Origin: Phallusia mammillata
Lineage: Eukaryota
Direction: 5' to 3'
Length of the DNA stretch: 64,000 nucleotides
NCBI GenBank assembly: GCA_965637545.1
Contig: OZ281494.1
Span: 16,554,001 to 16,618,000, forward strand
A model generated the notes under the pieces. It made no database searches. It saw nothing but the letters and a program-made list of their open reading frames with translations, and was not told where the DNA came from. Below, piece by piece: positions 4,570 through 64,000 of this stretch (position 1 is the stretch's first letter; every line of letters begins with the position of its first letter). A program made the translations under genes and the position numbers.

Positions 4570-4610
4570 TCAGCCAATAAAGGCTTACCCCACGTCACCT
4601 TACGTCACTT
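4570..4610. promoter_or_regulatory. CCAAT box plus two CRE-like half sites; candidate promoter
   Basis: CCAAT at 4574-4578, CACGTCA at 4591-4597 and TTACGTCA at 4600-4607, just upstream of the most 5' minus-strand exon-like block (donor at 4318). Confidence 0.35.
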
Positions 4611-42400: not shown

Positions 42401-45400
42401 CGTCAAAGCGTTTTACAACAAGATCCGCACGTATTGTTATTTTTGCCGCTGCATTGCTGTTAGTATATGAATGGGTCTTTATATACATATAAATGGGTTT
42501 GCTAACCAATCAATTAGGCATATTTTTCCTTAAATACCTACTATAAATGTGCTTCTGTAAGCAACGAGTCAATGTACACAATATGTGCATGTACATTCGT
42601 GTAAAAATATCGCGAAATTTAACAGTTTAATTTCAGTCTAGATTTTTTATTCCATGCCCCTTCCCAGACCTTATACGCTTGTGTAGTGACTTATTTCTGT
42701 TGTGTGATGAACGTATTTTCCTGTTGTACTTTAGGAAACAAAAAATCTTATTGAGGAAGAAATAAAATCCCTGGAAAGTTTCAGCCAACAAGCCGAAAGT
42801 GCCACAATCGATTCTGAACAAGAAGCAAAGCAACTGTACGAAGCTTGTCAGGTGTGTGTACAGTCAACAAATGATGCAGTACGTTTTTAAGTATTGTAGA
42901 TTTTTCTTTGGAACACTATATACATATCCTAACACTATATACATATCCTATACATATACGCCGTTTTCGGTTCTATTCCACAACAAGCTATTTTTTACAA
43001 TAAATGCTCAGAAAAAAGTAAAAAATGTGCATCAACCATATAAAAAGCGAAATAGATTTCTCGATAGCTCTACTTTACTGCTGCCAATGCTTATACGATG
43101 TGTCATGTCCTTTAAGTCAAAAATTTTCCCTAAAAAAAGTTCTTTCTTGTGCAATGTATATGTAGTCACAGATCATTGTGATAACAACGCAGCATGGCAA
43201 ATTTTTTTTAAGTATCTTTAGCATCTCGAAACTTTCAAAGGGCCTTTCCGTTAATCCGCACCTTTTGACAAACCGGCGCACGTTCTGCTATTAGCCCTAT
43301 CGGATAGCCGCTCAACTAAGCGTCGCAATGTCGATGACCCTTGCCAAGGGTCCTGAAAATATCGGTAAACAAACACTAGAGCCCCGGACTCGGCTGTCAC
43401 ATTGCCAGGCTAGTAGTGTGTATTCTAAGCGCAAAACCGCATCAACTTCTAGCCCTACTTAATCTTGTCCTCAATGGCCCACTCGTATTTTTGGCCCCGA
43501 ACGTGGACACTTTTGCCATTGCTGCTGCTAGGGCTTTAGGGGTACCCGTCTACCTCTTTGTTACTTTGAGCAGTTTGTTAGCTAAAGGCAATCGTAAAAT
43601 CGTGGTTTGAAGATTAGCGTCGTGCTACAAGTGGAGTCGTATTTATTTGATATTGGCGAATTTTATATGCGACATAATGAATTTTAAAACCAACGTTACC
43701 TAGTCGGCCTTTGATTTTGTTTTACGCTTGTAGCTATGTGCTTGAGTGAATTTATGTCAAGATCAGCAGACTATTTTCTCTATTCTCTATATATATTTTT
43801 TTATTTTCTCTATTTTAGTTTGTTTAAGAAACGTATTTTGTAACTGAAAGGATGTTTGCAAATCAGCAAGTCTACGTAAGTTTTCTCAAATTCCCAATTT
43901 TGGATTGTTATCATTATTTTATTTGCCTGTAAAGTATTAATTCATTTCATAAAACTGTTGTACACCCTAGTTTCACGTTTGAAATATCGTAGACAATATG
44001 TTTGTAGCTTAGCTCAAACGTAACAGGAAAACGTAGTTGTACTTCAATACGCTGCACATCCTACCGTTTTCAAATCTCCGCAAGCCAACAACGCGAAGTC
44101 GTCTATGTGTACCCAACGTACAATGTAACCATTACAACGCCACATTGCTATTTAATACCAATCTTTTACTACAGACGGCAGTTAGCGGTCTTGAGACTCT
44201 TTACCAGAGGGTGACAACAGACGTAGGAGCTGGACAGGAGCTTCATGCTGATGAGCAAGTGCCAGCTTTTCTGTACACTGACGTTTCTAACCTGGAAATG
44301 CAGTGGGATAACTTGCAACAGGCTGCCACAGCAAAATGTGAACAGATCAAGGTATTTCATTGCGTTAGTGGCGTAGATTTTCTGGGAATGTTTGCTTTGT
44401 TGACGTTGGTATGCTTTAGTGACTTCTGTGCTTCTGTTTAAGATTGGTTTAGTAAAGTGGTAAGTGGAAAAGCTTTGAAAGCTTGATTCGGTAATTGGTT
44501 ATGATTGGATATTTATCGCGAAATGTAACAGACTTGCTAGGTGTTGTGTTTTTATTCACAATTCAAAGGGATACGAAATAGTAACTATTTAATGATATAC
44601 ATGCTGTGTTCAAAAACTGAAAATAAGCAGCACATATATGTGTATGGAATTGATATTTAAAGCAATGTTATTTATATATTTTAGTCAACTGTCGATGCTT
44701 GGGAACAAAACGAATATCTTTGCTCGGAATTATCGGAACTCATTGCACAGACCTTACCTACATTGAATGCAAAACTACGACTTAGCAACCTCAACTCAAT
44801 AAACCAAGAAATAGCGGCAAAGGCAGCTCTACGAAAACGTCTTGGATTAGGCGAGGAGGATTTAAACAAAATCAAGACCGAAGCAAAAACTTTGTCCAAG
44901 AAATGCAGTCCTGCCGGCAAGAAAGCATTAAACGACCAGATAAAAACATTGGAATCTGGCTTGTCTGAGGTTTGTAGTGTAGATTATTTGGTTTATTTGT
45001 CTTTATTTACGTTCTTGAAGAAGTTTGTCTGTAATTTATTTTTGAGTACATAGGAATAATTTTGCTAGTTTAAAATCAGCACAGTTTTTGATGATAGAAG
45101 TTATGTGGGGTTAATATGGGCGTACTAGTGATAATCAAATCTTTTGTTTAGATTCGCGAAAAAATTGATGCAAGCGTGGCGAAGGTGGAAACAATTAAAC
45201 AGGAATGGATTAATTGTGACGAACAGCTGTCAGAGATTGGACAGTGGACACAGGACATTCAAATACAGGTATACTTCGAAACCTCTTTCCAAAAAACTAT
45301 AATTAATTTTCTGCTATACCTTCTAAGAGCACTTTGCATGTTAATGACTGTTGCCTAAATGTAACGGAGCCGTGATTGGCAATATTTGTCAGAAATATGG

Positions 45401-48400
45401 TATTTGTATCAAAAAGGGCATTTTAGTAATAATTTGTCGAAATTTATATTTCTTCTTATGTTTTACCTTTTTTAAAAACCGACGCGACTGTTTCATATAT
45501 CTAACACACAAGGGATTTTAGTTTTTAGTTTGTTTAGTTCATTATTTTTTGCTTAAGTTTTAAATGCTGCAACGCGATCAATGAAGTGCTGGTTAAACCA
45601 ACACTTTATTAGCACTCCAGACCTCAAATCACAAAAAGCACGTTTAAAGGCACTAGCGACCAAGCACGCGGTGTAGAAAGGTGACTTTGAGATTGTAAAT
45701 GCTTACATTACGATTAGAAATTCGACAGTGCAGCGCAAAGGCAAATGATCTAAAACAACAGAGCATAGAAACACGCATAAATATCAAGCTGCTATTTTGA
45801 CAATTGTTTTAGAATCATTTGATTTTGTCAGTTTGGTCTTTACAAAGGCATTCCAGGGGAAAATAGTGCAAAACTTAGGGCAGTGCCAGTTGTATTTAAC
45901 TTAATCTAATCATTTCATGCTTTTGGTTTTGACTTTAAATAGTGATCTGTCAGAGCGAAGAAAAACACCATCAGTGTTAATTTCGGAAAATATCTCAAAT
46001 GACAATTATGTGACCACGTGGTCAGTTGGCATTTAAGGAAAGATTTGAAAGCAGGCAGATGTGTAGCAACGTAGCATATATCCATACTACAGTAGCATAG
46101 TATAATGCCGTATACTACACACAGTAAGCATCGCCTGTTTGGTAGCGTTAAGACGCCCGAACATTGGTATGTGTTTGTGGTTGGGCTTGTTGTATCCAGT
46201 CTGCGCTTGGCAAATATTGACATGAACTTCTCACATCTTTTTGTTTTGAGAGATTTCGTTAGGCAAGCCGCCAACGGACAGGTGTGTACCTAAAGGCGGT
46301 AACTTAACTAACGATTTTGGTTTCGAAATTCAAGGTTTCGGAAAAGATTGTCGCTTGTTTTTGCTCAGATTTTATACCACAATCTCACCAGACCCGTTTT
46401 ACAGCGGTCTGTATATTCCCATGTTGGGCAATGCTCAAAAAATCAAAATACATAAAATATGAAATAGGACCTCCTCTACAACGTATACCATTTGTTTTAG
46501 GTTAAATTTTGACAACACCGATAAGCACTTTTTGCTAAATTCATTTTGTTATCCAGGTTTCGGAAATCGAACAGTCGCAGGAAAGCGCTGAAGTTCAATT
46601 CAGCAAAGCTCAGGAGGCGGCTGGTCTTGTTTACGGCAAAGAACAAGAACTTACGAAACTCGAAGAGCGATGTTCGGCGATAGAAGGACTGGAAAGTCCC
46701 ACCACACTCGACGCTAAACTCGCTACTGTTAGAGGCAAATGGAAGCAGGTTGGTTTCAAATAACTTATTAGTTAAAAAGGTTAAGAAAGTATACAAAATC
46801 CTATGTAAATATAAAAGCTTCGAGCCAATACATGATAAACTGCAGACAGTGCACATAAAAAATAAAATTAAAATTAAATGATGGAAAAAAAGGTCATAAC
46901 AACAGTCAAGCATTTTTGTTAGGCGTTGCAAAGAAAATAACGGTGAATTTAAAAATTAACCATTTTAAGGTCCAAGCCCGTGTGGAAGCGCTTGTAAGCA
47001 GCTTGGGGGAACACCTGAGCCACCAGGACAAGTTTGACGCCACCAAGCGACAAGTGGAAGAATGCTTGACTGTCGCTGAAGAGGAGTTAGATTCGCCACT
47101 GGAGGCGTGCGGAAACTCCGATGACGTCATCGAGAGGAAAAATGATCACTTGGTATGTTTGTTACGCATATCTGTCTCTAGTTTAAACCGATTTGAATAC
47201 TTGATGCCAAAATGCGTTTTGTTTAATTTTCAAACTGCTGTCAGGCCACTTGATTTAATTCCGTTTGTTTGTTTAGAAATTTTCACACGGATTGGAACAA
47301 GTACGACTTGGTTTGACGTCACTACAAGCAGAAGCCAAATTGTTAAAGGATTCGCGATCCGCACAACTTGCGAACAAGGCGTTGCAAAAGAGGTTGGTAA
47401 CGTTTCTTCGCATGCGGAAGAAAGCAAACTCACGATTTCGGACAAAAAGTTTTTAGAAAGCATTTGAGAGGATTCTAAAATGACACAGCTGAAATGGACT
47501 GACAGTTTAACTTTCCTTTCTCCCCTAATTTGTATTTTCGATTTATTGCTTAGATACAACGATGTAACACAGCAAGTAAAAGCGCGTTCTAAGCTGCTTG
47601 ACGAAGCTCTTAACCAATGGCAACGCTACGAAAAAGATGTTAATGTCGTGCGCAACTTTATTGACAAGTAAGTGTGCTGTAAACATTTGCAAGTTGTTGT
47701 TGCTGGTGGAAAATCTTGGTTTGATTATCTCCGTACGGACGCCATGTATTGCTTACAAACATCTTCTTGACTAATATTTATTAAACATATGTTTTAAAAT
47801 TGATAAAAACTTAACACGTTCTTAACTTATCTTATTTTGTATAAGCAGTACATTTGCGAATTTTCTTGTTCAAAGTTTGAATTCATTGTGTTTAAAAAGG
47901 TGCGAAAAAATCGTGAGCGAAGACAGCGGTGGTTTGCCTGGCGATCAACAGAAGTTGAGAAACGAACTTGAAACTGCTGACAAGTTGTGCAAGTCTGTAC
48001 CAATGTACCAGGTGCGGAACACCAGTCTGTGTGTGCCAGGGTTAGGGAGTTGCCGAATTTTGGTCCCCAATACACAAAAAAAACACATAGAACGGATACT
48101 TTTTTCGAATACTGAAAATTACAGATTAATTATTCAATGTTTCCTGCTAAACGATTTTAATATCCCCTTTTAACCTCTTTAATCATTGGTTTTGCGAAAC
48201 TGGTTAATTCTATGAAACAGTAAACTTCTGTTAAACTTCAATTAGTAAAAAAGAGGTTTACTTTATTTACAATCCAGTGGTTCTTAGCCTTTTTTCTTGC
48301 TGCACCCCTTTCGAATCACCAAGCAATTTTCGCACCCCTTCTGTGATTGCTTAAATGACAAAACCATTGTAATTTAATTCCCCTCTGCATCCCCGCACCC

Positions 48401-49316
48401 CTTAGGAGCAGTTCTCGTACCCCTTGGGGGTGCGTGCACCCCTGGTTAAGAACCCTTGATTTACACCGTCTCTTGTCCAGGAATCAACTGCTGCGTTAAA
48501 AGGCCTTGTCGATGAACTTGCTGAGTTGGTTGAAGTTGACAGTGACCTTCTGCTATCACAAATCAGCGCAATGGTAAGTATTTGACTGTTACCTGGCCTG
48601 GTTTCTAGAATAACAGACACGATTCTGCTACACGTGCATGTTCTAATTAGAACACAATAATCGGCATTTGGTTGTTTTACATTAAACCCTTTTTTGCGTG
48701 GGTTTCCAAGGAGCGACATGAGTGGTTGTATATATTTTTTGCGTAACGCCTATACTCAAGCCGAAGACAATTCGTACTTGTTACAACCTAACGAGAATGC
48801 GTCGAATTACGTCAGTGAAGTTCTCTATTTCCAAGCTTCCGATTAACTTAAATGCCAAGAAATCTTGACGGCCTATGTTTTGGAAAACAGGAAATTCTAC
48901 TGAAAAATCTACCTCAACAATTTGCCGACCGAAAAAGAATCGTCGCCGCCGCCCTAAACTCCCACGTGATGTACGCCGACACAGTTGAGCGATTTACCAG
49001 TTGGCTGCTGGCCTTCGAAAAATCCCTTCGCGACACAACTGACGTGTTCCTTGATGACGTGGAACGTGCTGTAACCGTCATCAAAGTAAGATTTGTATGT
49101 GGTGATTGTGAGTGGTTAAGATTGTGGCTGGGATGTTTGGGATTGGACAGTTTGAATGCGAGAGGAATGGCGGGCAGTTGTTTTCTGCTCGGTGTGCGGT
49201 CGTTTGCTTGTGTTTTTAGTGTTTTGTCAGATAGTTTAGTGTTTTTGCAGCATGCCAGATTAGAAAAAAATGGGATTAGAACCTTGCAGGGACACTTGGG
49301 TTTGTCTGGTGAATAA
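24437..49316 (+). CDS. SYNE1: Nesprin-1 (SYNE1/2)-like: two CH domains plus spectrin-like repeats; ~1,840-aa KASH-less model, longer form may continue beyond the window
   Basis: 39 phase-consistent exons: 24437-24472, 24815-24899, 27583-27644, 28063-28158, 28302-28385, 28553-28645, 30079-30263, 30738-30943, 34011-34114, 34714-34869, 35101-35208, 35378-35542, 35692-35812, 35885-36045, 36856-37008, 37118-37270, 37568-37885, 38362-38505, 38982-39155, 39261-39348, 39468-39688, 39942-40120, 40428-40551, 40807-40970, 41477-41612, 41929-42057, 42189-42302, 42735-42851, 44175-44351, 44685-44969, 45152-45268, 46557-46748, 46970-47152, 47277-47392, 47554-47667, 47900-48011, 48481-48573, 48891-49085, 49251-49316. 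Motifs [75 protein letters not shown] and [19 protein letters not shown] are nesprin-type. Confidence 0.92.
27022..27058 (+). CDS. SYNE1: Alternative first coding exon of the nesprin gene
   Basis: ATG...[12 protein letters not shown] + G|GTAAAA phase-1 donor, which joins exon 27583 in frame ([11 protein letters not shown]). Confidence 0.5.
29198..29227 (+). other. 30-nt exon-like block with a consensus donor in the intron after CH1
   Basis: aatgaAG|ATTCGCC...ATG TTA CCG|GTAAGT; phase 0 matches exon 30079; TGACGTCA at 29259. Confidence 0.35.
31101..31182. mobile_element. Small 82-bp inverted-repeat element (MITE remnant)
   Basis: AGGACTCGAAT ... ATTCGAGTCCT perfect 11-bp inverted ends; internal degenerate direct repeat AGGA(C/T)TCGAATCC..A.GCAAA.TATTC. 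Confidence 0.45.
33648..33834 (-). mobile_element. hAT-type MITE (family 1, copy 2)
   Basis: CAGTGGTTCTTAACCT ... GGTTAAGAACCCCTG; reverse-complement homologue of 16378-16655 with a single internal unit; degenerate TSD ttgtaaac/ttgtaacg. Confidence 0.88.
34294..34594 (+). repeat. Degenerate tandem duplication (~160-bp period) in a nesprin intron
   Basis: AAGGATTGTTACAA...TAGAAAAAC.GG.AAAATA.GTACA.AAGCA...TCAAACTGGT...TTATTGTTTTGGGTC recurs at 34294 and 34454; an inner ~29-bp duplication TCGGGGAAGGCA.TCTTATT.TTTTG is also present. Confidence 0.55.
36133..36580. mobile_element. hAT-type MITE (family 2), 448 bp
   Basis: TIRs CAGTGTTTCCCAACCT and AAGTTTGGGAACCACTG; perfect 8-bp TSD GGTTAGAG (36125-36132 and 36581-36588). 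Confidence 0.92.
41113..41213 (+). other. tRNA-derived element (SINE head or pseudo-tRNA)
   Basis: A-box-like TGGCCGAATAG (41120), D-stem-like GCCG/TGGC, GGGA-TTCG-TCCC hairpin, T-arm GCGGG-TTCGAAC-CCCGT (41189-41205); the acceptor stem does not pair. Confidence 0.5.
48275..48458 (-). mobile_element. hAT-type MITE (family 1, copy 3)
   Basis: CAGTGGTTCTTAGCCT ... GGTTAAGAACCCTTG; colinear with copy 2; ends 22 nt before the acceptor of exon 48481. Confidence 0.87.
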
Positions 49317-49350
49317 ATGTGCAATTAACGTGTGTTAAATGTGTTGTGTA
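49312..49350 (+). terminator. Poly(A) signal overlapping the stop of the short nesprin form
   Basis: AATAAA at 49312-49317 contains the TAA stop (49314-49316) and is followed by GT-rich sequence. Confidence 0.55.
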
Positions 49351-49712: not shown

Positions 49713-51818
49713 CTAAAGATCTTTGTTGTACGGTGCGTTGAGGTCAAAGTAGACTGGTTGTTGTTGAGGAATCGGCTGTTCGTAACTATTTTCACTTGAA
49801 GTGGTTGTAATACTTTCTACATCCGGATCACGTCCGCTTGAACCATTGTCATTTTGAACAATATTGTCCAGAATCTGTGCTGAGCTTTTTGGTGCAGATA
49901 CCGTAGACATAGGTTTCAAACCATCTGTAATACTCTGAGGCAGTGATGCCTTAATTTGATCGTAGAAATGTGTCACGTGCTTTCCATCGCCATCCTGATT
50001 GGTTGAGATATCAATATCAATGTATGGCGGTAATGGAATTGAATCGTCAATGGTGTTGGTTTCGCTTTCGAGTCGTGTGTGAGATCCGGTAAACTCATTG
50101 CCGTACCTGGGACAACTTTTTGTTACATAACGTACTAATTGAAATTGGTAGCTTTAATATAGCATTTGAGGTTTGCATAATCTTTAAAAGCGGTGTATTT
50201 ACAAAAGCAGCGTAATTTACTACGAAATTGGTCAAACAAGCTAGCATTGTTCTGTTAAAACTTTGCTTGCCTTTTCCATATTTTTATGAATAGTCCTAAT
50301 GCGAACATAGGTAGTAGAACAGCAATCACGATCAGAACCGTTCGTAACGACTTTGCACCTAAAAAAATATTTTGTTGGAAAAGGCACTTGAGGTTATTTT
50401 ACCAACTCACCTGAACCTGGTATGTATTTATTTTTCAGTGTGTAAATGAGATTGGTTTTTGATAGATCGTGATCGGCAGCGTAATAGAATGAGTTGTTCC
50501 ATCCGCCAGTCACCGCTATACGGACAAATCCTAGCAGTTGGTTCGTTTGGGCTTGTGGCCTGTAAAAAATGTTTTCGTGACCTGATTCGAATTTAAAAAA
50601 ATCCAATATTTGTTTTGGTACAACTTGCCATTTAAATGCTCTTACTTAACGCTTAAAAATTAGGTAGGCAGAAAAAAAATGCCGATTTGTTTGTGAGACT
50701 CCGTACCTTAAGTATCCCATGACAAGGCCGGGTTTGGCCTCAATCAGATGCCGTTTGTTGATGCAGCGATACAAATATTTATTTGGAGCTCTCCACAAAG
50801 TCGACAGGTCGCCCAATGCCCCAAATCCTGTCGGGCATTTCATTCTCCAGACTTGCAGAAAAGTATGCGAGTAAAATATTCGAGTTATTTGTGTCGGTGT
50901 TGCTACGTCATCACCTTCGATGCTGAAAAAAATTCACTTTGACTGTTTGTTTTTGAACTCAGCAGAATATTTGTCTGCCCTACACTTAAAATGTCGGACC
51001 AGTGCGGCGATTTCCAAACTTTTTAATCGGTTGCTCATACCACGCACTGAAAACCTAAAAATATCGATAACCATGTGGCCAAGAGCGATTTTTACAAATA
51101 TGAATACATAGAAGCAAGTAGTACGACTATCTTTATATAGTAGTACCAGCTCCAGTAGCCTTTTGCTCCACCGTTGTAAGCCAAGGACTAGATTGCAGTG
51201 TAAAAAATAATGTACTGGACACCGTACTACGAATGCGATTTTTTTCTGTAGCACTTCTTTTTATCAAACAAACACCTCAGACCCCATCAAAAACTTATTG
51301 TCTGCAAATTCTTCTGGCCTTTTTCAACATAAGCTTGTCTTGAACTGTATTTTTTTAGACTTACCCTGTTACAACTGGCATGAGTAGTTTTGGGTAAGGT
51401 TTATTTTCCTCTAAATGTTGTCCGACGATATAATAGCCTGATGTTCGAACAGGTTCCCAGATTGTAAAATGTTCATTTATGGTTCGTGTTATATTTGACG
51501 CTGGCCTCATCAGCACGCGGAGTTCGCATCGTGATAACGTAAGACCTGCATTAGTTAGGGAATTTATTTTAAGTTTCCGCTTGATTAAGAGGAATCTTCA
51601 AAAGTTTGACTTTTCGTGTGAAGTATAATAAACAAAAACACACCAGCAAGCAGCAACAACATCTGGAATCGACTTTGACTTAAATGTACTACAGTAAAAA
51701 CTTTTTTCTTAAGACTTATAGTGTAAAAATTTGCTTGCCTTATCACACAGCTTGGAAAACATATTTTATGTCATGACTTACCTGCAAAATAACACATGAA
51801 AGTCAACCACGTATGCAT
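49713..51818 (-). CDS. Receptor A: type-I membrane protein with Vps62/DUF946-like ectodomain and Tyr-motif tail (~354 aa)
   Basis: Exons 51818-51782, 51545-51365, 50922-50707, 50559-50411, 50358-50271, 50106-49713 (1065 nt, open frame). Signal MHTWLTFMCYFAGLTLSRC; FTIWEPVRTSGYYIVGQHL; VWRMKCPTGFGALGDL..YRCI; TM TVLIVIAVLLPMFALGLFI; tail with PPYIDI, HFYDQI, PVYFDL. Confidence 0.8.
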
Positions 51819-52644
51819 TTTGCTATATGCTTTACCTGTCTAACATAGACTAAAGCGCATTTGCAACAAACGTGTACATCCCTACCGCCTCACTTGCAGT
51901 CAAATACTTTTCCGCTGTGGCATATACGGAAGTTGTCGTTAGGAGCCATAATGTACATTGGATTGGTGTTTCTTCTGTTGACAATGTAAGACTGATATGA
52001 CAGTTTGTTACATTCAGGTTTATTGTCAGTACAATCATAACAACACACCTAATAACACTTGTTTGTCTTGTAAGCATCACTTTATCGTACGTTGAAAAAA
52101 GATAATAATTGGGTTTAAATACATATGCTCTTAAGTTACATAGTATTTTGTCTCCCAGAGTAAGGGATAAGATCATCTATTGTTTTGGTCTTAACACTAA
52201 AACACCTCTCTGTGACGTAGAATTACGAAGTAATACGTTCATCATACGCTCAAGACTCCGTGTACAACCTACGCATGTATAGGTCATGTGCATGTTTAGA
52301 ACTGTCACGGCCCTTGGTGTTTCAAAGGTTCAACTCAATGACACAGACATGATTTATTTATTGCGTTATACGGTATTTTTTTCCAGCTGTTAGTCAATAC
52401 CAAAAACACTTTTTATATGGATTGAACCCATTCCGATTTGGTCGGGCCGAAAAGGGTTAGAAAAATACAATGTAAAGAACCATTGGGATTGATACAAAAA
52501 TTGCTCTTGCCGTTGCTTTTAAGGAACAAGCAGAAGTAACTGCGTTTCGGTTTCAAAGTCGCTCGACGTCTTACTCTCATTAGAAAAATCGCTCTGCTCA
52601 TTTCACGACTTTTTGCGGGGACTCAAACATCCTTCCAAAATGTT

Positions 52645-55321
52645 TCATACTTGATTCGGCGTAGCGTAGACATTCATATTCTGATAATTAAGCGGGCTCT
52701 CAAGAGCTTCGGGCACGTGATGTGTCGGCAATTCAGCTGCGAAAGCGTAATCGCATTCTCCATTGTCCATGCCATGATACAAAATGTTCGGTTTCATTGC
52801 TCGGTTATCTCGTTGAGGTTCGTATAAGATATTGTCTCGCAGTTCCGCTTCCGGGTTCCCATACAAGTGAGGGCTTCCCACGTCCCGGACCACTTCGTAT
52901 TCGCTCTCATTGTTAAGGGTTACTGTGGTTGTGTTCGTGTTATTTACACTGGCAGGTGCGACCTTCATGACGTGTTTCTTGTGCCTGTGTAAAGTTCGTT
53001 GAAATTAGTTCCTTAGAAACTTGGTTAGACGTATTTTAAACACAATTTAATTGCATCAACGGAAAATGATTTTGTGCCTGAAAATGTTTTTTAAAACTTG
53101 TACACTAAAATGTCTAATTATTTGTTTGTTATTGACAAATAGGGACTGCATTTCACATTACCATTTATTTGGTTTCACCCTTGTTCTTATTTGGTTTAAA
53201 ACCTTTATTTTGAGTTATATGCTAAAGCGACATAAAGATGATGGTATACGATTTACCGTTTGCCAATATAAAAGAAGATGTATTAAAAAACATAACAATT
53301 TGCATAGAAACAACCCACTTACCATATGCAACAAGCAAGTACCATTAACGACAAAAGACTGACGCAAACCAAAACACCAATTGCCACCTTTAAACCAGGA
53401 CCAGTATCTAAAACAAAACATTTTAAGTTGAAGTCAGGTTAAAAAATACGTTGACAAACGTTTTCGTGACGTCACAACGTAACCAGTGACGACTGTCCAC
53501 CTTGTGACGTAGTACGGGTCAGTGTGGTTGTCGTTGATCGATTAGGTGTTGTCGAAGTTGATATTGGATGTAATGCTCTTGGCGAATCCGTTTGGAGAAT
53601 AACTGCATCTACGTATACAATTGAGTGTATTTAAACAGTTTGTAAGTTTGATCACAAAGTGATGTAAAAATTGATATATTTTTCAAAAACCCAACTGCGT
53701 TGACCACAACAGTTTAGCTTCAATTATCACATTAATTTGATATGTAAAAAAAACGTTTATCGCAGTTAACAGTTGTATGTAGACCACTGGTTTACCTTTC
53801 TTAAGAGCGTAAACTCGTTTCTTGGAATGGTATGCGAAGTTGAAAAACGGATTTTTCCATCCATCTACTGCAATAGCACTTCCATAGATCGCATAACCAG
53901 GATTTCCTTCACTAAATGCAGTTTTTCTTCTTTACACGAAAATCAATTCTAATTACCAAACCTTGCTAAAAACTTACCTCAACGAATCTTGTAGCCTTGC
54001 TGGGACTGTGGCCTCCCGTATAACACATCGGTACTTTGACATGTCTGGTTTTCTTCTTGGTCCATCAGTTTGTAATCTTGAGGCAATTGATCCAAGGCTA
54101 ACGTATCCCTTTGGACATTTCATCAACCAAAAAGCAACCGTATCTAACATCACCCATGGTCCGTAAAAGTCCAGTGGTTCAGCCAAGCTTTTGTTCACAG
54201 ACCTAAAGGTGTGAAAATTTAAAGTATTTTGCTTGGTGATTTTTTAGGCCAATAAACGTGCTTAACATGCCCTTTCCGTTTTTTTATTGTGCTATATAAG
54301 TAGGTTTTAAAACTCTAACAATTCGGCACCTCCTTTCTTAAAATCGTATAGACATAATACATATAAGTTTGAAGTAATACCTTCCAACGAACAATTCAGT
54401 GTTGGGAGGAGGATTGCTTTGGCTATTGTGAGCAAACTGTCCAAGCACGTAGCTATCGTTGACAGGTGGTACAGGCTCCCATACTGATGCACTGTTTTCT
54501 CCAATGACTGAAAGATATGTTTTCACAACTATGATCTCCACCTTTGGGTTGCTAGCCAACGTGAACGCTGGAAAATTAAGCGAAGTAGTAAATTTTCTAT
54601 AAATGTCAAATAGCATTGTGACAAAGGAAGCAACGTGTTGAGATTAAAACTATGTAGATTATTTTTGTGAAAATATTACCTCCATGCACGTTTTGCTGTC
54701 TGAAACGTTCGTATTTTTCTTTGTTTATTTTTCTTTATTGGCTCATAAGCTTTTTGTAACTTAAAGCTTCTTTAAGCACTTTGGTATGCCCATTATGTTG
54801 AGACGAGGGTTTTTTAGCCAACAGTTTTTCCCGAAATTGTCATTAAGACGAAGCGAGTTAAGGAAAAACCCATTTACGCGTAATCCAAATATCATCTGGA
54901 TTGCGGAAAGCCGACTTCCCCTTAACTGCGTGTCCAGTCTGCATGTTGTTTAAGCAGTGATGTTTCTCGAAGCAGAAATTTCATGACATTTGTTGAACGC
55001 AAATGAGAGTTTTATTGTTAAATGACACGAATGTGTTTAGCACCTGTATTTCGGTCCAAACTTTAATGTTTTAGCAGTTCTATGCGAGAAGTTCCTTAAA
55101 TTTTAGTTTTGACAGTTTCGAAAACATCAGCCGAATAATTGTAAACCTTTTTTCAAGTTTGAAATCTTGATTATATTTTAAAAGGGCGTAAGTCAATTTG
55201 TCGTACATGTTTAGCGTACTGACTGATTACATCACTTAAATATAGAAACATTTTTCCACCATTTGTATTCGTACTCACCAAGAAATGCAAGTAGATAAAC
55301 TGACGATATATCTAATCTCAT
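52645..55321 (-). CDS. Receptor B: paralogue of A, Vps62-like ectodomain, Thr-rich stalk, TM, Tyr-motif tail (~367 aa)
   Basis: Exons 55321-55279, 54567-54381, 54202-53978, 53911-53796, 53608-53501, 53407-53323, 52984-52645 (1104 nt, open frame). Signal MRLDISSVYLLAFLAFTLA; SVWEPVPPVNDSYVLGQFA; FWLMKCPKGYVSLGSIA..KYRCV; TM VAIGVLVCVSLLSLMVLACCIW; tail with SEYEVV, NYQNM, NVYATP. Confidence 0.85.
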
Positions 55322-57239
55322 TCTTTTACGTACTGTGCACCGAATTTTATTGTTACTTATAAACACGAAATCCGGTATTATTTAGAATTCTATGGGAAAA
55401 TTCAGTGTAAAATGAAGAAATTAGGTCACTGTATGCATATATAATACACAACTTTTTCAACACGGTCCATCCAGGCTACAATGTATTCTAACACGTCATC
55501 GCAAATGCTGAACCGCGCATCAACACAACACACTTCATTGTACACCTTCGAAATACTCTCCAATCATCACATACTAAATTATACTGAAAGACATGTACAT
55601 TACAGCAACCTGTCAGCTTTATAATATCGGCCAATAAAACCCATTACGATCACCGTATTCAAGTGGTGCTGCCTGCTTGCCTCTTCGGCTTCTGTCTGCG
55701 TTTGTTGCGACATACTCACAAACAGCAACACAAGCTCTATGACGTCACAACTGCGCTGTCCGTGTTTCCGATGTAACATATCCTGTAAGGGCCAGTAATA
55801 CAGGTAACACCCTTTTCTGTGTCCTTCTTAATAGATTGCTTGAAATGACAATTTTTCGACACAACTGTGTGCACTTTGAATTAAAGCTCAAAACATGCGC
55901 AGCTTACTACACGAAAAGCAATCTACATGCTATTTTGCCTCAACAGCTTTTTGCATGCTTCTCCGAAATTAGCAGCATATACTACAGATGATATTTTATG
56001 TAATTTGGAACCTGTCATTTTAACATGCCTGAATTCAAACTTGACGTAGCTTTCAGGACACACGATTGCTTGAAATTGACACTACCAGTGTACTATTTAA
56101 TTTTGCTTTTTAGCATGCCAATCCGATTGCAACATGAAAACCACGCCTAAACCCTATTACAGCCTGTAATGATTTCGCCAGTTAATCTTCCAATTCTAAA
56201 ATTACCTCCTAAAAGTGAAGTTTCCAAACTGTTGGTAATTAGATACGGTCCTAAATACGCACAAACGCTCAACTAAATCCCTCAAAACTTTTCATGAACT
56301 CGCTGTAATACTCATTTATCGCTGTTAATTTATCATCAAAAACGCTGTTACATTCCCCGCACGTCATGTGATCAGAAATAGCTGCCAGACAACACGCTTC
56401 TTCAATTAATTTCCCTACGTTTGAGCCCAATTTAGCTTTGTTATCTTTTTTGCTAATTTCTTTCTAAGTATCACCCACCCAGGCTTTTTGGGCACTAATC
56501 GTTAACTTGGACCCAGAAATGTTTTTCTTTGTGTTTCGTCAGAAGCGTTTGTGTTGACGGAAATAGTGATGATGTAATATGGAGGAAATGTGACGTGCAA
56601 TGTTGGTCTTGCAAGCGCCTACATCCAGAAAACATTTGCTGACGTAGCTCACGCGTTATGTGACATAAATGTTTTTCTACCCCCAGCAAGTGTCAACAAC
56701 TATTTAGCCACATTACTACTATAAATTAAAAAAGTCAGAGAGTCAGTGTCGTACTATGGGTCCTTTCGTGGTTGTACTTTATGACAGTTGAATACATACC
56801 CTGCTACGCAACAGACACACAGAACCCAGTGCAATATTTTTGTTTTTTCAAAACAGTTCCACGAGGCATAACTACAGTGCTTGGAGCAGGCATCAGATCA
56901 AGTATTTTGGCTTCTTTCAACATTGAAAAAATCTAAATATTAGTGGAATAAATTAATGACAACGCAAAGGCACGCAAAACACAGTGCATGTTAAGTATTT
57001 GTTCAAGTTTGATGAAACAGTTCTTGGCGGCATTATTACAGTGGTAATGAGAAGACATTGGATTAAGTTCGGTATTTTTAGGGATTGATAAAATACGACA
57101 CGACAAAGCAGCATAAAGAGAAAATATACAACAAATACACTACGGTGCTCATACTAGACCTGATACAGTACACGTATTTGTTTATATGAAGGGTTCATGC
57201 GCAATAGGTGATACAACAACAGAAGACAACCATTTTTGG

Positions 57240-59849
57240 TCAAGTCTCGACGCTCTGTTTCCGCACCTCTTGATATTTATCATCTACTTTATTAAAACGC
57301 TCAAGAGCTCCGTTTTCTTTACTGATGGTGCCGATGATTTCGCCATAAGGGGATATTCCTGATGCCGCTCCGCTTGTTGACACAGTGTTGTTATTTGGCT
57401 CGTGCAAGGTAAAAGTGGGACTACCTGTTGTGCTAGCTGTAGCTTCGGGTTCATCCGGCGCAGGGACGATCAAGCTGTACTCTACTGAATCGTTTTCAAT
57501 CGCTTTTAGTGCCACGATCTCGCTGTATTGGCTCACCGCTTGTGCATTGGAGCCATTTTCGATTTTCTGTATGGCCACTATTTCGCTGTATTCGCTAACT
57601 GTGGCTTTTTCTGGAAGCTTCGGCGGAGGTGGAGAATTGGATCCTCCAGCTTTGTCGCTGTTTTCTGTAGGGTTAGGAACATCAGACGCAACATCATACA
57701 GGAAAAAGTTTCCACGCCCGAAAGATGTTGACGGTGCTCCTTCTGCATCAGGTGTTTTATCCCCAGTTATCTCACAGTACGCCTTGTCTCCGGTAACTGG
57801 TATTGGTTCCAAGTAGTCGTTCTCCTTTAGCCTGACTCCGGGGCGTTTTTGGTTTCCGTCAAGGTCAATCACGTCGTACGGTCGTTCAGGCATTGGTATG
57901 TTACTGTAATCTGCTCGCTGATTGGCTGAACGCAAACTCACGTGAACAGCGTATGGGTTAATGTCATCACTTGGTTTTGGGCGTTTTCTGTAAAACAATA
58001 TTCCTGTGATGAGAGACAGGTCAATTTTAAAATTCATTTGTGTGAGTATTTAAAAAAAAAATGATAAACTTAATGTTTGACCCGAACATATGTAGTGTGA
58101 CATACTGGAAACGGAACAAATTAATCTTCCATCAAGACCCTGGATTGCTGCCCAGTTTGGAGTTAAACAAATTTCGTTTAATGTCCAAGTACTTATCTTT
58201 GACAGAACTGACCTTTGCCGACGTCGATGCATGAAATTAATTACCGTTCCCACGATGATTGCGAGCAGTGCAAGTGACAAGAGCATTATCCATAGCCAAG
58301 AGCCGCTTAACAGCGATGTACCTCCAGCTGCAGAGGACGTAGTTTGTGATGAGATCGTAGTTGCAGTCGCTGCGTTGCGCGTCGCTGAAAGCAAGATCGA
58401 AGTCGCCGTTTGCGCTGTGGATTGCATGCCAAGGGTCGCTGTTTGCGCCGCAGTGGTATTCGCAAGGATAGCAAAAGATGACGCGGGCTGCGCTGTCGTC
58501 ATATGTTGCGCGGGAGCGCCGCTAGTGGTAAGCACAGTGCTGCTTTGCGCGTCGCCTGCAGTCGGGCATAAAGTGGTTGTTGCGATAAAAAATCCTACCG
58601 AGGTCTATAACTTACCTGGATCGCTGGTTGCCGTGTTTGAAACCAGAACAGACACTGGCACCAGACTTGCTGTAAGGTTTACGTTAAAGCCGACAGCCAC
58701 AATGACAACCTGGATTGTTGGTGGCCACGAGGTGGCGCGCTCCCACGGTACGTGACATAAGTTCACCGATTTGGCATCGAATTTGGAGTAGTTTTCGCTT
58801 TGGTATACATAAGGTGAATGATAGACCTGGCACAGATTTCGTCGAGATGAACAAATGCGGTCATCTGTAAAAATATTTTGGCAAAACTGTTCGATTTGTT
58901 TTGTAAGTTATATGTGGCATCAATTAATAGGTACCTACCGTTAGGCATTGTGACATATTCCTGTGATACATCGTAGCACCCTTGACGATTTTGCGGCGAA
59001 TAAATATCCCCTCTCACCATCATGACATAGGTTGTATTGGCTCCTTCTGTTGGAATTGCCCAAGAACAGTTGATTCTCGTGTTGACGTGCAAGTTATACT
59101 CGTTCTTCCGTATTTGTGTTGTTTCGCACTTTGTTCCTGGCATTGAGGCTGCATAAAAATCTAAATTGTATTCATTTTTTCTTTTTTTCAATTTTTTGAA
59201 AAACTTTCATAAACGTGAATCAATAAGCACAGGTTCGATATAGTCTTCATCTAATACCAAGCAACGAGCTGGGATATTGTAGTTTTAAGTTAAAAGTTTA
59301 GAGTATTGCATCTTGTTTAGTATTGCGTATAGTCTATTTCTATGGCCATTTGGAAATACTAGAACGTACATGCGTGGCATTAATAAAGTCCGTGTCATTA
59401 TTTTGTCAGAACAGCATTATTAATATGTAGGAAGCGCACTGGTCGGAAGGGCGCGTGTTTTGAGTGGACAGAGACAATTTGCATCCGGTCGTGTCAGATA
59501 CAAAATTCAAGCGAATATATATTTATACATGGACTTTATGAGTGTTATTTTTATTACAAAACATTTTTAAATTCTTTCAACAGAGTCGGTAAAAATACCA
59601 TACGATTTCCAATTGGATCAGAATGTTTTACGTATCTAACCTTCCAGTGTTTTTTTTTTGTACAAGTAACGGAAATGTTGGTACCAAAGTTGATAGTTTT
59701 TGTGAATTTTTTATCTCTATTTGTTAAGGTTACTTTCCTTTGTATTGCGACACACCATCATTAATATTCGCCCACGTTTTCTTACCTCGTGATGAAACCA
59801 CACACAGTGCAAGTAGTGACGTCACGATTCCGGCAGGTATTTGCATCAT
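57240..59849 (-). CDS. Receptor C: divergent CUB-like domain, Ser/Thr/Ala stalk, TM, multi-ITIM tail (~537 aa)
   Basis: Exons 59849-59786, 59148-58939, 58864-58616, 58555-58213, 57987-57240 (1614 nt, open frame). Signal MMQIPAGIVTSLLALCVVSSRA; Cys-spaced KCETT..INCSWAIP..GCYD..RICSSRRNLC; TM WLWIMLLSLALLAIIVGTVINFM-HRRRQRKRPK; 11 Tyr in the tail. Confidence 0.85.
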
Positions 59850-61655
59850 AATTGCGTCAACAATCGTGAATCATAATTAACTTATTTTCGAAACGTTTTC
59901 CTGAAAATTTTGGCATGTTTTTGGTAAGAGTGACAAATGTTTGCAACTGCCAAAGCACCATGTCACAAACAACCGATACTAATTTATTGCTACTGTAATA
60001 CGTTTGTGGCATTCGGGTATGTAATTTGCACAGATTGTGCTTTTGTTTTCTACCGAAATGCCAGTTGGTAAACGTGTGATAAACTTTTTCGTTGTACATT
60101 CGTATCTTTAAAAATATACATTTCACTATCTGTCTTCCATTCATAAATATCAGTCGAAAATAGGGAACAAATATATACTTTACTTACACTACACTAATTT
60201 CTAAACAACGCAGAATGTTTCTATTCGGTTTTTCTCTATAGTTTCAATTAACTGCTAACTATATCACTGGCTTTCAGTAACTGCACTAATTCATTCTGCC
60301 GTAACTTTTTGCTGAACTAGTCACAATAACAATTATGGAAACCGCCTCCGCTATCTACTCTTGGTTCACACGCAATGATAGCATGGCTCGTATCACGTGA
60401 TCGGAAATTGCGCCTGGTTACGCTGCTTCCGCTTTTAGGATACGTCACTTCGATGTGTCGTTTGTTCTCCTGCGACATCATAAGGATCTTGATTACAAAC
60501 ATTTTGTTTCTACTTTGTCAAAATATTGGTTTTGTTGAATGTGCCTTGCGTACATTTTTGCCCAAAATTCTAATACATTTAAAAAGAAACCTGACCCAGA
60601 GACTTAAACGAAAGATGCAGTTTTATTGTTTTACCTACTCTTCGATGTAATCTTCAAGGCCCAATTTTATTTAAATTTCTTAAAATAACTTACGTGAGGA
60701 TAAATTTACTTGAATTAACACACATTTGCCCAAACCTCCGCGCAGTAGTTTTGTGCAAATTAGAATAGTTTGTGGACGCCCACATTGAAATGATCGTTGC
60801 TATCTATATACTCATGTTGGTGACTCCTGATTAATCATTAGCGTTATTTCCTGGTGTAGAATTGGATCTGAAAACCTAGGTGGCTCAGAAAACTCTTCTT
60901 GTCCCGCTGACGTCAGGTAACTGTATTAATATTGCGATGAATACATGATGTCGTCAGACCAAACTCTGCATCATTTTGAAAGTGTGTATGTGATATAAGT
61001 TCTTTGCTTTGTTTCAAGGTGTTTTTTGTGTTTATTTCATTTATTTTTTTAACAAAATCGTCGGAATCCAAATAAAACAAAACGACGTTTTAAAAAAACA
61101 TAAATGAACACGAAAAAAATATTGTTTTAGAAAAATAACACAAAAGAAGTATACGTTGCAAAGCTGTAATTACCTACCACATAAAATATCAGATAAAAGT
61201 ATAACAGGTCACACTCGTCGAATACTGTACGCAGTGGTTAAAACCAATTTATAGCAACAATTATATGTAGGCCTACGTCGCTGCAAGTATTGAAAACAAA
61301 CTGTGTTAAAAAAACTGTCATTAGAACTTTGCGACATGTTAAAAAAACATTTACAAATAGAAAAGCGCCTTATCGACAAACAGTAAACAAAATTCTTGGA
61401 ATTTCGGCCATTGTTGCAGATATGTTAGATTAGTTTGCAAGCGAGAATGCAATCTTGCACTTTGCCAGTTTGCAAGCACTCTGCAAGGTAGATAATTAAG
61501 TTTTATCAAGTTTTAATTGATTGTATGTGGTATAATTGTACGTAAGCTGGTGGTCACCTTTTTGAGCCCGAACAATTTTTGTTCCTTCACCTACAGTTTT
61601 GATTGGTCTTGGTCCCCTGCCATAGTGTATGCAATCTCTACATCGCCGTTACTGC

Positions 61656-62764
61656 CTAAAGGTTATTAGGGTTGTTATACAGCTCGTTGACGACGGTCTG
61701 TTTTTCGCTATCGCCAATTTCAATTGCTTGGTAGACATTGGAGTTGGGTTTTTTCGTGGACATTGCACCATCCTTAATAGTTTCGTATGTCGGGTCACCG
61801 TCCGTTCCAACCCGATGACGTGCGATTATGCCAGCTTTTGCCCGGTCCAATTTCTTTTGTTTTTTGCTGTTCATAAAAGAGCCTTTAGGGTTCGGCTTGA
61901 AAAAAGACTATAACATTAAAACCTTGAAGTTGACACCAAAATGTAAATGCCAAGGCGTTTCGAGTTTATCACTTTATGCATGTATATTTAAAATCTAAAA
62001 CCTTGTCTATTTCGACCAGACTTACCTGTATAAAAGAAACAGTATCACTCCAGCTCCTGCAATCAGAAGAGCTGCTGCTACAATAAGACCAATGTGTAGA
62101 TCACTAAGTGCTGGGCTTCGACCTTTTATTTCTTCGTCCTTGTTGGTTTCAGAAATTCCTATTTCAGGTCTTGTTGATGGTGAAACTTTCGTACTAGTTG
62201 CGGTTTCGATTGTCCCTGTAAGAATATTTACATAGTATTGTCGTGCGTTTTCAGCGACCAAAGTATGTTTTAACTATACCATATAGAAAAGCTTGAATTG
62301 TGAGTTTTGTGGATTGATTTACTTTAAATCTTATATTGTTCCAGTTTGGCTCATCAAACACCTCGCAAGCTGCTTCATTTTCTTTTTCTTCTGGGTAGAG
62401 CACCACGCATCCAGCTAATGCTGGAATCTCGTTTGGGAGTGGAACTATTGTTCCACTTGTTATGGTAATTACAATCTTACTGTATTGATCGCCTTTTAAC
62501 TTCACGCACTGACTTTCGGGGAAGTCGTATGAAGTGGGAACAGTTTCTAACATCAGTAGTTGGCAGTTGCGGTTCATACCAACTGCAATACAAATGTTTT
62601 AATACGAGATTACCATACACATGTGGATTTTATCATGCAAACAAATGCCTATAGTTGGTTGACTTTTACGACAAAACGATACGTTTAGAGTTCTAATGCT
62701 CACCAGTTGTGGAGATGCATTCCAACAAAATTCCTAAAGCTGTCAAGATGGCAATAAGCAACAT
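61656..62764 (-). CDS. Receptor D: small type-I membrane protein with a 4-Cys ectodomain and short YxxI-bearing tail (~254 aa)
   Basis: Exons 62764-62704, 62582-62280, 62215-62026, 61866-61656 (765 nt, open frame). Signal MLLIAILTALGILLECIST; ~100-aa ectodomain exon (phase 1-1); TM IGLIVAAALLIAGAGVILFLLY-SKKQKK; tail YETI-x14-YQAI...LYNNP. Confidence 0.82.
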
Positions 62765-63366
62765 AATATTTGTCTATTGTAACTAAACTGCAATTGAACG
62801 CTACATTCCAAATGTTTGCTTGTTTTATTTCCTGCTGCTAAACACATAAACCCGCACCTGCACACAAACGTCATCTTGTATCGTAGTGATTAAACAATGC
62901 GTCACCATAACACTATTCACAACATGCGTTTTCATCACATATGAATAGCCATTAAAAGTGTTTCGTTTCTGTTTGTGATTATAATTATTCAACCTGTTTC
63001 TTTACGAGGTTCGTATACGAGTAGCTATCACTTGATGGCTAATTATTTCTCAAATCAATTACGCATTTCTTCACCTTGTTGGTAATGCAGTTTGATATTT
63101 GAGTCAACGCTAAACGCAGAACACCATTATAAGCATATGGGAGTTACAATCTTAACTTTTTAATGTAAAAGCATATAGAGCCAATAAATGATAAAGATTG
63201 TAACTATTACACAAAAACACATAGCAAACTTTTAGCAGTTGATTTGGTGCGTGGAAAAAGTTATATCAAACTAAATATTAGCCTGTATATTTGCATGTAG
63301 TTCAGTTTTTGCAGTGTCTATTACTCTATATACGAATCACAGTAAATTAGCAACATTTTAGCCAGT

Positions 63367-64000
63367 TTAGGAGTCTACTACTACAGTACGAATCAATGCG
63401 TTGTCATACTGGTTAAAATGGATGATTGTAGTTGAGTACCTGTCGCTATGTTTAGCACTTTGATATGAAGTTGTATAAGATGGCTTGGTTGCTAATGTCT
63501 CGCTTTTATCATCAATCCGCTCCAATGTGGTTGTCGAGCCTTGTTCGGACAGCAATAACTCGTCGCTCGTGGTTGCCAATTGTTTGCCAGATGATTTTGA
63601 TTGGTAGTTGTGTCTGACCAGACCGTTCCTAATGTTGATAGGATTACAAAGGTTTCCGGGTGTTTGCTGTTTAAAACTGTAGTGTTGGTAGTTAGATTTC
63701 GATTTCCATCTTTTGGGCTATTGTCCCTCTTGGTATCGTTTGTGGGAGTATTTTGGTAATTTGTGGCCACTACCGCTCCGTGTAAACTTGTGGTTGATAG
63801 ATTGTCGTTTGTTTTATTGTTGGTATTTGTTGCTTGGCTTACGATTGTGGTTACCGGTATTTGGTTTGGGGTAATCGCTGTTAAAGTGTTAGATGCGCCA
63901 ACTTCGGTAGCTAATATCAGGGAGACTATTGTTGTAGCCATTACAAAATATTGGTTGTGGTCGGGTTTTGGGTAAAGTGTCCTGCTTAGAGTAGTCAATA
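63367..64000 (-). pseudogene. Mucin-like Thr/Ser-rich ORF with an apparent frameshift (pseudogene, allele or assembly error); 5' end outside the window
   Basis: ORF 63998-63492 is T/S/N-rich up to ...SDTTTN (~63600). T/S-rich sequence continues in another frame (SKSSGKQLATTSDELL...STTT...) to a stop at 63367. Confidence 0.45.

Follow-up and report, generated by a model that had tools for sequence, protein, structure and literature searches.

Does the row of tyrosine-motif genes in this stretch of the genome of the ascidian Phallusia mammillata form a paired immune-receptor locus, as the initial annotation had proposed, or is it a group of a different kind? The window, i.e., the whole stretch analyzed, comprises 64,000 nucleotides of contig OZ281494.1 (positions 16,554,001–16,618,000 of the forward strand) and is AT-rich eukaryotic DNA with a GC content of about 0.38 and zero N. 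At 49.7–62.8 kb its minus strand carries four stop-free gene models with GT..AG introns, designated A, B, C and D. They are four different receptors on one architecture and not a paired activating/inhibitory family; the reading as a paired immune-receptor locus is not supported. We consider it probable that the row consists of four tunicate-restricted genes of type-I membrane glycoproteins, whose tyrosine-motif tails would serve as docking sites for SH2- or PTB-domain proteins. An immune role of the row is possible. The four genes are as follows.

49713–51662, minus strand: gene A, 6 exons (51662–51611, 51545–51365, 50922–50707, 50640–50411, 50358–50262, 50106–49713), 389 amino acids (aa); signal peptide, beta-tripod (Vps62-like) ectodomain, transmembrane segment (50276–50341) and a 131-aa tail with 6 Tyr.
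52645–55321, minus strand: gene B, 7 exons (55321–55279, 54567–54381, 54202–53978, 53911–53796, 53602–53501, 53407–53323, 52984–52645), 365 aa; signal peptide, beta-tripod ectodomain, S/T stalk, transmembrane segment and a 112-aa tail with 7 Tyr.
57240–59849, minus strand: gene C, 5 exons (59849–59786, 59148–58939, 58864–58616, 58555–58213, 57987–57240), 537 aa; signal peptide, 6-Cys ectodomain, 81-aa S/T/A stalk, transmembrane segment (58233–58298) and a 249-aa tail with 11 Tyr.
61656–62764, minus strand: gene D, 4 exons (62764–62704, 62582–62280, 62215–62026, 61866–61656), 254 aa; signal peptide, single-exon ectodomain of about 100 aa with 4 Cys, short stalk, transmembrane segment (62028–62093) and a 69-aa tail.

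The models were built from three-frame views and an exhaustive search of GT..AG combinations keeping one open frame, and they bear out the initial description of at least four complete minus-strand genes sharing one plan. In every gene the hydrophobic N-terminus (signal peptide) is encoded by a first exon with a phase-1 end, the transmembrane segment by an exon with a phase-2 end, and the whole tail by one last exon. Each protein possesses a single strongly hydrophobic transmembrane segment around its C-terminal third. Also as described initially, every ectodomain contains Cys residues and N-x-S/T sequons, and the stalk rich in S/T/A/P is optional, being present in B, C and D and missing from A. 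Together these features predict that A–D are type-I membrane proteins. The common plan is real and only weakly diagnostic of common descent, because phase-1 signal exons are generic for secreted proteins and the chance of one common end phase for all four transmembrane exons is about 1 in 27 (estimate). Among the ectodomains, only those of A and B are homologous, with 25% identical residues along 106 aa; those of C and D are unrelated to A/B and to each other. No mid-membrane K/R/D/E residue is found in the four helices, and a tblastn search across the whole window revealed no further paralogues of A–D.

A homologous transmembrane/tail module common to A–D was considered and rejected, the four tails showing no mutual similarity in Smith–Waterman comparisons with shuffles. 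The same comparison does recover tail B against its Ciona counterpart (z 7.7) and tail C against its own (z 10.2).

How old is the row? A tblastx comparison of the window with the Ciona intestinalis locus (L003) gave collinear matches: B corresponds to 10.5–13.2 kb of L003, C to 7.0–8.6 kb, and the 3′ exons of a giant plus-strand gene (41.9–49.1 kb of the window) to 23.0–14.5 kb on the opposite strand. The order of the D-position gene, C, B and then the convergent giant spectrin-repeat-like gene is the same in Ciona, and only A is lineage-specific within the row. These collinear matches argue that the row is old and stable in order, with at least the C and B positions kept in synteny. The initial annotation had envisaged a fast-evolving locus, and understood as birth-and-death expansion this claim fails against the conserved order. 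The row proteins do diverge faster than the giant gene (34–53% versus 37–74% identity in the main exon matches).

The giant gene itself is represented in the window by its 3′ exons (41900–49320, plus strand), which run convergently towards the receptor row and give a weak spectrin-repeat match (E=0.008). Its main exons match, at that identity of 37–74%, exons of a Ciona intestinalis gene annotated as 8927 aa, an annotation that covers the whole receptor locus on the opposite strand.

What do A and B display on the cell surface? The most solid new point of this analysis is an animal receptor with a predicted beta-tripod ectodomain, represented by A, B and Ciona LOC100176218. The domain that Pfam calls 'Vps62' is the beta-tripod, a fold originally reported for GNIP1Aa, an insecticidal MACPF protein that uses it for target recognition; members of the family occur mostly in plants and fungi (PMC7613979, PMC8624791, PMC10683392). 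The orthologue of B is a 387-aa protein (P0004), listed in RefSeq as 'uncharacterized protein LOC100176218' of Ciona intestinalis, which is 34% identical over 324 aa and arranges signal peptide, ectodomain, S/T stalk, transmembrane segment and Tyr tail as B does. Both genes have seven exons with 6/6 identical intron phases, which provides independent support for the B model. An earlier version of that model stands except for the start of exon 2, corrected from 54507 to 54567 with a better signal peptide and a match to the N-terminus of the orthologue. A literature search on the identifiers of LOC100176218 found no paper.

Pfam searches with single exons gave a weak Vps62 match in exon 3 of B (E=0.003, 16.5 bits; cut-off 22.1). 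The Ciona intestinalis orthologue scores 19.2, and a partial protein of C. savignyi (P0006, H2YLM4) exceeds the cut-off at 23.5. A profile of only two sequences, exon 3 of A and of B (A2), retrieves 84 proteins among 1.84 billion representatives and reaches strong PF06101 members at E-values of 1e-14 to 1e-8. All eight non-Ciona matches scanned with Pfam (8/8) contain Vps62 at 51–143 bits, one of them together with trefoil and aerolysin domains; two relatives carry names, one being a 'Vps62-related protein' from Bacteroidota and the other a protein secreted by a gecko. A PDB sequence search with P0004 returned nothing meaningful. The ectodomain fold was computed with AlphaFold2 (AF2) on the Ciona orthologue (P0004, residues 26–212), not on the A and B proteins of the window, from a 71-row alignment (A3). 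The model has a predicted local distance difference test score (pLDDT) of 80 and a predicted template modelling score (pTM) of 0.80. Its best PDB match in Foldseek is GNIP1Aa (6fbm_A; E=2e-7, template modelling score 0.71). VIA-align superimposes 177 of 187 residues on GNIP1Aa 311–518 (Z 18.9, root-mean-square deviation 3.3 Å), followed by pleurotolysin B at Z 12. The initial label 'Vps62-like' for both genes was thus well chosen, and the ectodomain of A/B is, judging by the modelled orthologue, a divergent beta-tripod, a single domain in each protein.

Two of the profile matches deserve mention. P0005, a 973-aa protein from an ENA contig, combines trefoil, aerolysin and three Vps62 stretches, a composition reminiscent of pore-forming toxins. 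The gecko Heteronotia binoei contributes P0076 (LOC132567301), a short secreted protein of 237 aa, so the beta-tripod fold is present in vertebrates.

Gene A lacks a counterpart in the Ciona locus, a homologue search found none for its tail, and its full-length beta-tripod remains alignable to bona fide Vps62 proteins. It has the appearance of a strongly diverged copy of B confined to this lineage. Its model is of lower confidence than the others because two of its donors are weak. One of them, the donor AA|GTTTTA of the transmembrane exon (50258–50265, minus strand), would if unused lead to a stop 7 codons past the helix (...KRQAKF) and yield a short-tailed form of the protein.

The tail of B contains four motifs of interest, including the only immunoreceptor tyrosine-based inhibition motif (ITIM) of this gene.

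52888–52905, minus strand: SEYEVV, the sole ITIM of B.
52816–52833, minus strand: NILYEP.
52771–52788, minus strand: NILYHG.
52657–52674, minus strand: NVYATP.

The Ciona orthologue keeps N[IV][LI]YEP, PN[IV][LI]Y.G and N[IV]YA, and does not keep SEYEVV in its ITIM form. N-x-x-Y is the core of PTB-binding and sorting signals, and through it we infer a link of N[IV][LI]YEP and PN[IV][LI]Y.G to signals of this type.

Does any of the tails carry a conserved signalling code? The second most solid point is that C appears to possess an ascidian-wide conserved tail of the ITIM/ITSM (immunoreceptor tyrosine-based switch motif) type. It also contains a pair resembling an immunoreceptor tyrosine-based activation motif (ITAM).

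57939–57959, minus strand: NPYAVHV, membrane-proximal motif.
57867–57911, minus strand: YSNI-x6-YDVI, ITAM-like.
57576–57599, minus strand: VSEYSEIV, ITIM-type.
57513–57536, minus strand: VSQYSEIV, ITIM-type, the extra copy of an internal duplication.
57465–57488, minus strand: SVEYSLIV, ITIM-type.
57327–57356, minus strand: ISPYGEIIGT, ITIM-type, the last motif.

Canonical ITIM-type motifs number 4 in this tail against 0.48 expected from shuffles (P=0.0009). The initial annotation had described all the tails as rich in Yxx(I/V/L), which holds for C (8 observed versus 1.8 expected in shuffles) and not for B (1 versus 1.2). A search with the tail exon found relatives in a Logan contig (P0001, 53% identity) and an ENA contig (P0002), and locus L001 shows the same layout of transmembrane exon, intron and tail exon as gene C. 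In Ciona, a 482-aa gene directly upstream of LOC100176218 (L003, 5634–8637) matches the second half of the C ectodomain and the tail. P0001, with an overall identity of 53%, shares 10 of the 11 tyrosines of C (hypergeometric P=0.008); the Ciona gene, with an overall identity of 24%, shares 6 of 11 (P=0.026). Preferential conservation of tail tyrosines, which the initial annotation had made a touchstone of its reading, is likewise seen for D (3/3, P=0.03) and to a lesser degree for B (4/7, P=0.08). Each of A–D has one predicted transmembrane helix followed by a disordered tail, in which Tyr residues are conserved between species while the spacers drift.

Conservation of the C tail is motif-wise, the membrane-proximal PYAVHV, YLxP and YxEI being kept and PYAVHV being invariant in three species. 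Three of the ITIM-type motifs have counterparts in P0001. The distal one, (S/T/V)xY(G/A)(E/A)I(I/V), is kept in four species (Phallusia mammillata, P0001, P0002 and Ciona), and conservation extends over the following.T...G.LER...KY..V.K. An internal duplication of about 21 codons (57513–57599, minus strand; VSEYSEIV.../VSQYSEIV...) adds one ITIM, and its extra copy is absent from P0001; the repeat is too diverged for the program TRF. The ITAM-like pair is kept in P0001 and not in P0002 or the Ciona gene. Among the other genes, A and D lack ITIMs and B has its single one, not conserved as such; a canonical hemITAM was observed in none of A–D. Of the mixture of inhibitory and activating or adaptor-recruiting members proposed at the outset, there remain the four ITIM-type motifs of C, the distal one conserved, whereas the ITIM of B and the ITAM-like pair are not kept in Ciona.

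The contig carrying the distant relative P0002 (L002) has transposon-like open reading frames just upstream, at 5800–8300. No recognizable C-type ectodomain exon lies within 10 kb upstream of its tail exon.

Is the row expressed? Of ten runs located, in three studies, the contigs of four were compared with positions 57200–63199. Run X1 yielded three contigs on gene C with joints 59786|59148, 58939|58864 and 58213|57987, exactly on predicted boundaries; the skipped pieces read CT..AC on the plus strand, that is, GT..AG for a minus-strand gene. Gene C is thus confirmed to be transcribed and spliced at three of its four predicted junctions. The junction between exons 3 and 4 (58616|58555) is absent from these contigs, in which the stalk region (58459–58562) is uncovered, so the expected splicing of the models was seen in transcripts for all C junctions except this one. 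It belongs to the following short intron.

58556–58615, minus strand: 60-nt intron of gene C, between exon 3 and the stalk/transmembrane exon, perhaps retained.

The third X1 contig (depth 6) covers 58563–58864 without a joint, running 52 nt into this intron before it stops. Read-through would meet a stop right after ...SDPGKL, and a soluble isoform of the C ectodomain, free of stalk, transmembrane segment and tail, is possible on the evidence of this one contig. X1 differs from the reference at eight positions of gene C, all in the tail exon. The differences comprise five amino-acid changes and one synonymous change, none in a Tyr motif and all between motifs. The X1 contigs break exactly at the tail duplication (57513–57599).

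The ectodomain of C had been called 'CUB-like', a label that finds no Pfam or PDB sequence support: CUB (PF00431) was not matched in the C exons at E<=10 or in the Ciona counterpart exons at E<=1, PDB sequence searches with the C exons gave no meaningful match, and a two-species profile of the first ectodomain exon retrieved no PDB chain. The Cys spacing and the C-x-W and C-Y-D...P-N-D (C-(Y/F)-D) motifs are compatible with CUB. From its predicted sequence features, C is best described as a Cys-patterned domain on a mucin-like stalk and D as a small orphan. The '4-Cys' ectodomain ascribed to D is confirmed, with 4 Cys on one exon of about 100 aa, for which a homologue search found nothing. The D tail contains PTYETI, NVYQAIE and VVNELY. 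In Ciona, the D-position gene has its transmembrane exon at L003 3884–4075 and its tail at 4348–4671, and all 3 Tyr of D align with this tail (Y.TI, Y..IE.G, VVN.LY; BLASTP E=0.058, shuffle P=0.02), which is suggestive of orthology.

The B tail (52648–52983, minus strand) also shares motifs with the Ciona D-position tail (L003 4348–4671, plus strand), namely DYA.A..P.H.V, VYATP and N[IV]LY, in a different order (BLASTP E=0.006 for one comparison; shuffle P=0.03). DNILY in B corresponds to DNVLY in the Ciona gene. This sharing may be a trace of a common tail vocabulary or of exon exchange between neighbours.

How might such receptors work? We hypothesize that the outer domains bind a ligand and that Src-type kinases phosphorylate the tail tyrosines, creating docking sites for SH2 or PTB proteins. 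For C we envisage an inhibitory or scaffold receptor that attracts an SHP-type phosphatase by means of its conserved ITIM/ITSM-type motifs. B may dock PTB or other adaptors through its conserved N-x-x-Y and N-x-Y motifs.

Several points weigh against this reading of the row as docking receptors. The signalling mechanism is deduced from motifs only, the YxxPhi motifs could equally be read as AP-2 sorting signals, and Yxx(I/V/L) enrichment in shuffles is not significant for the tails of A, B and D. The models of A and D are drawn from sequence alone; that of A requires the two weak donors GTCAAA and GTTTTA, and no contigs were found on gene D in the four runs, although contig absence is no proof of silence. 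The 'RNA' label of run X1 is a guess, although the GT..AG joints argue for complementary DNA. With respect to the ectodomains, the apex motif DxG[ST]GxxxD has zero matches in P0004 and P0006, and A and B read ...SVWEP and ...TIWEP at the aligned apex positions. The name 'CUB-like' for C derives solely from the 4-Cys/C-x-W pattern, and the single-sequence AF2 model of the D ectodomain is unusable (pLDDT 37).

Could part of the row be non-functional? A and/or D would then be decaying duplicates or mis-joined open reading frames, and only B and C real genes. The weak donors of A, its tail without homologue and its missing Ciona counterpart fit this possibility, as do the zero contigs on D and its ectodomain without homologue. 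We nevertheless regard it as unlikely, given that both models stay stop-free over 4–6 exons with matching phases. The beta-tripod of A can still be aligned at full length to Vps62 proteins, and chance alone would hardly produce its open tail frame of 146 codons (estimated expectation for the region, about 0.1). In D, three Tyr motifs align to the Ciona D-position gene.

Alternatively, A–D may be endocytic or sorting receptors, with YxxPhi and N-x-x-Y as internalization signals of the AP-2/PTB type and ectodomains capturing cargo for uptake. YxxI/L/V and NxxY are indeed consensus forms of tyrosine-based sorting signals, and whole motifs are conserved beyond the Tyr residues. The beta-tripod, a binding module in toxins, could take up cargo such as a glycan, a lipid or a toxin-like ligand. 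However, the eleven Tyr of C are more than sorting needs, and in its four (S/V/I)xYxxI/V motifs position –2 is occupied by a residue characteristic of docking sites for SH2 phosphatases (P=0.0009), which leaves this explanation rather improbable.

Least probable of all is the proposal from which we started, a fast-evolving paired immune locus of haemocytes or epithelia mixing inhibitory and activating or adaptor-recruiting members: the four ITIM-type motifs and the one ITAM-like YxxI-x6-YxxI of C, the faster divergence of the row and the ITIM/hemITAM receptor clusters of the tunicate Botryllus (PMC12582321) speak for it, but its defining features are absent, because the ectodomains are 25% identical at best, the tails are long (69–249 aa) and mutually unrelated, and the helices are uncharged in mid-membrane, so that none of A–D offers a short tail with a charged transmembrane residue; moreover, gene order is conserved with Ciona in place of turnover, neither Ciona nor P0002 keeps the ITAM-like pair of C, and the ITIM of B is not conserved.

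We therefore return to four different docking receptors as the preferred reading and consider what it would mean. ITIM/ITAM signalling is well known for vertebrate immunoglobulin-type receptors. Tyr-motif signalling has recently become known for immunoglobulin-type receptors of Botryllus (PMC12582321). The row would add ascidian single-pass receptors with conserved ITIM/ITAM-type motifs on ectodomains outside the immunoglobulin superfamily. The beta-tripod has been described from bacterial and fungal pore-forming toxins and from plant VPS13 (PMC7613979, PMC8624791, PMC10683392); the literature found contains no description of it as an animal receptor ectodomain. As a speculation to which we attach little confidence, ascidians may have turned a toxin-type beta-tripod into the ectodomain of a signalling receptor, in one recognition-plus-signalling row with C as the ITIM/ITSM partner and D as an adaptor-like member. 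If true, the row would recognize microbial, lipid or glycan ligands, and immunoreceptor tyrosine signalling would have a pre-vertebrate form without immunoglobulin domains. In Ciona, the uncharacterized LOC100176218 and the genes next to it offer an experimentally accessible model. These orthologues could date the joining of SH2-phosphatase docking tails to surface receptors in chordates and reveal the ligand of a beta-tripod in an animal.

Beyond gene D the window contains one further open frame.

63495–63998, minus strand: open S/T-rich frame ('mucin-like ORF', open reading frame) of 168 codons, 32% S/T/P, 5 sequons, leaving the window end.

The initial name is not confirmed: the frame matches no Pfam family, runs off the window and is not assignable to a gene within it. 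Several high-depth contigs of runs X1–X3, unrelated to one another, match in either orientation a 33-nt stretch containing AATAAA (63162–63194) between D and this frame. Their flanks do not fit the window, and the stretch is probably a short common word of 3′ untranslated regions or repeats. No Rfam matches occur across 49–64 kb, and the only tandem repeat is a 17-bp one in the last intron of gene A.

Which known systems does the row resemble? With KIR, Ly49, PIR/LILR and SIRP it shares clustered surface receptors, one of them with ITIMs. Those families, however, place near-identical ectodomains on either an ITIM tail or a short tail with a charged transmembrane residue, a pairing that A–D do not have. 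The vertebrate inhibitory receptors PECAM-1, SIRP-alpha, PD-1 and Siglecs are type-I proteins with two or more ITIM-type tail motifs. C resembles them in topology and in having at least two (S/I/V/L/T)xYxx(I/V/L) motifs (four), and differs from them in its ectodomain, which is not of the immunoglobulin type, and in the lack of a detectable sequence relationship. CDCP1 and DCBLD1/2 are CUB-domain single-pass scaffold receptors with multi-tyrosine tails. Their order of CUB(-like) domain, transmembrane segment and long tail with many Src-type and YxxP motifs is the architecture claimed for C, whereas no sequence similarity to them was found and C has no Pfam or PDB CUB match.

The nearest tunicate precedent is Botryllus schlosseri, whose Fester co-receptors (FcoR), located in fuhc-linked clusters, are type-I proteins bearing ITIM, hemITAM and 'core' YxxI/L/V motifs, with tails that are shortened or altered when introns are retained (PMC12582321). 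Both cases concern clustered tunicate type-I membrane proteins with Tyr-motif tails. However, FcoR and Fester belong to the immunoglobulin superfamily, are polymorphic and copy-number variable, and form cognate pairs (PMC12582321), whereas A–D combine non-immunoglobulin ectodomains and unrelated tails with a conserved single-copy order. For the ectodomain of A and B, the closest comparison is GNIP1Aa (PDB 6FBM), the C-terminal domain of pleurotolysin B and PF06101, with which the model of the B orthologue shares its fold (Z 18.9 and Z 12 for the two proteins). Relative to PF06101, A and B have lost the apex motifs DxG[ST]GxxxD, and B and its Ciona relatives score near the Pfam cut-off. Unlike GNIP1Aa and pleurotolysin B, they appear to use the single domain, without a MACPF or aerolysin module, as the whole ectodomain of a membrane-anchored protein with a tyrosine tail.

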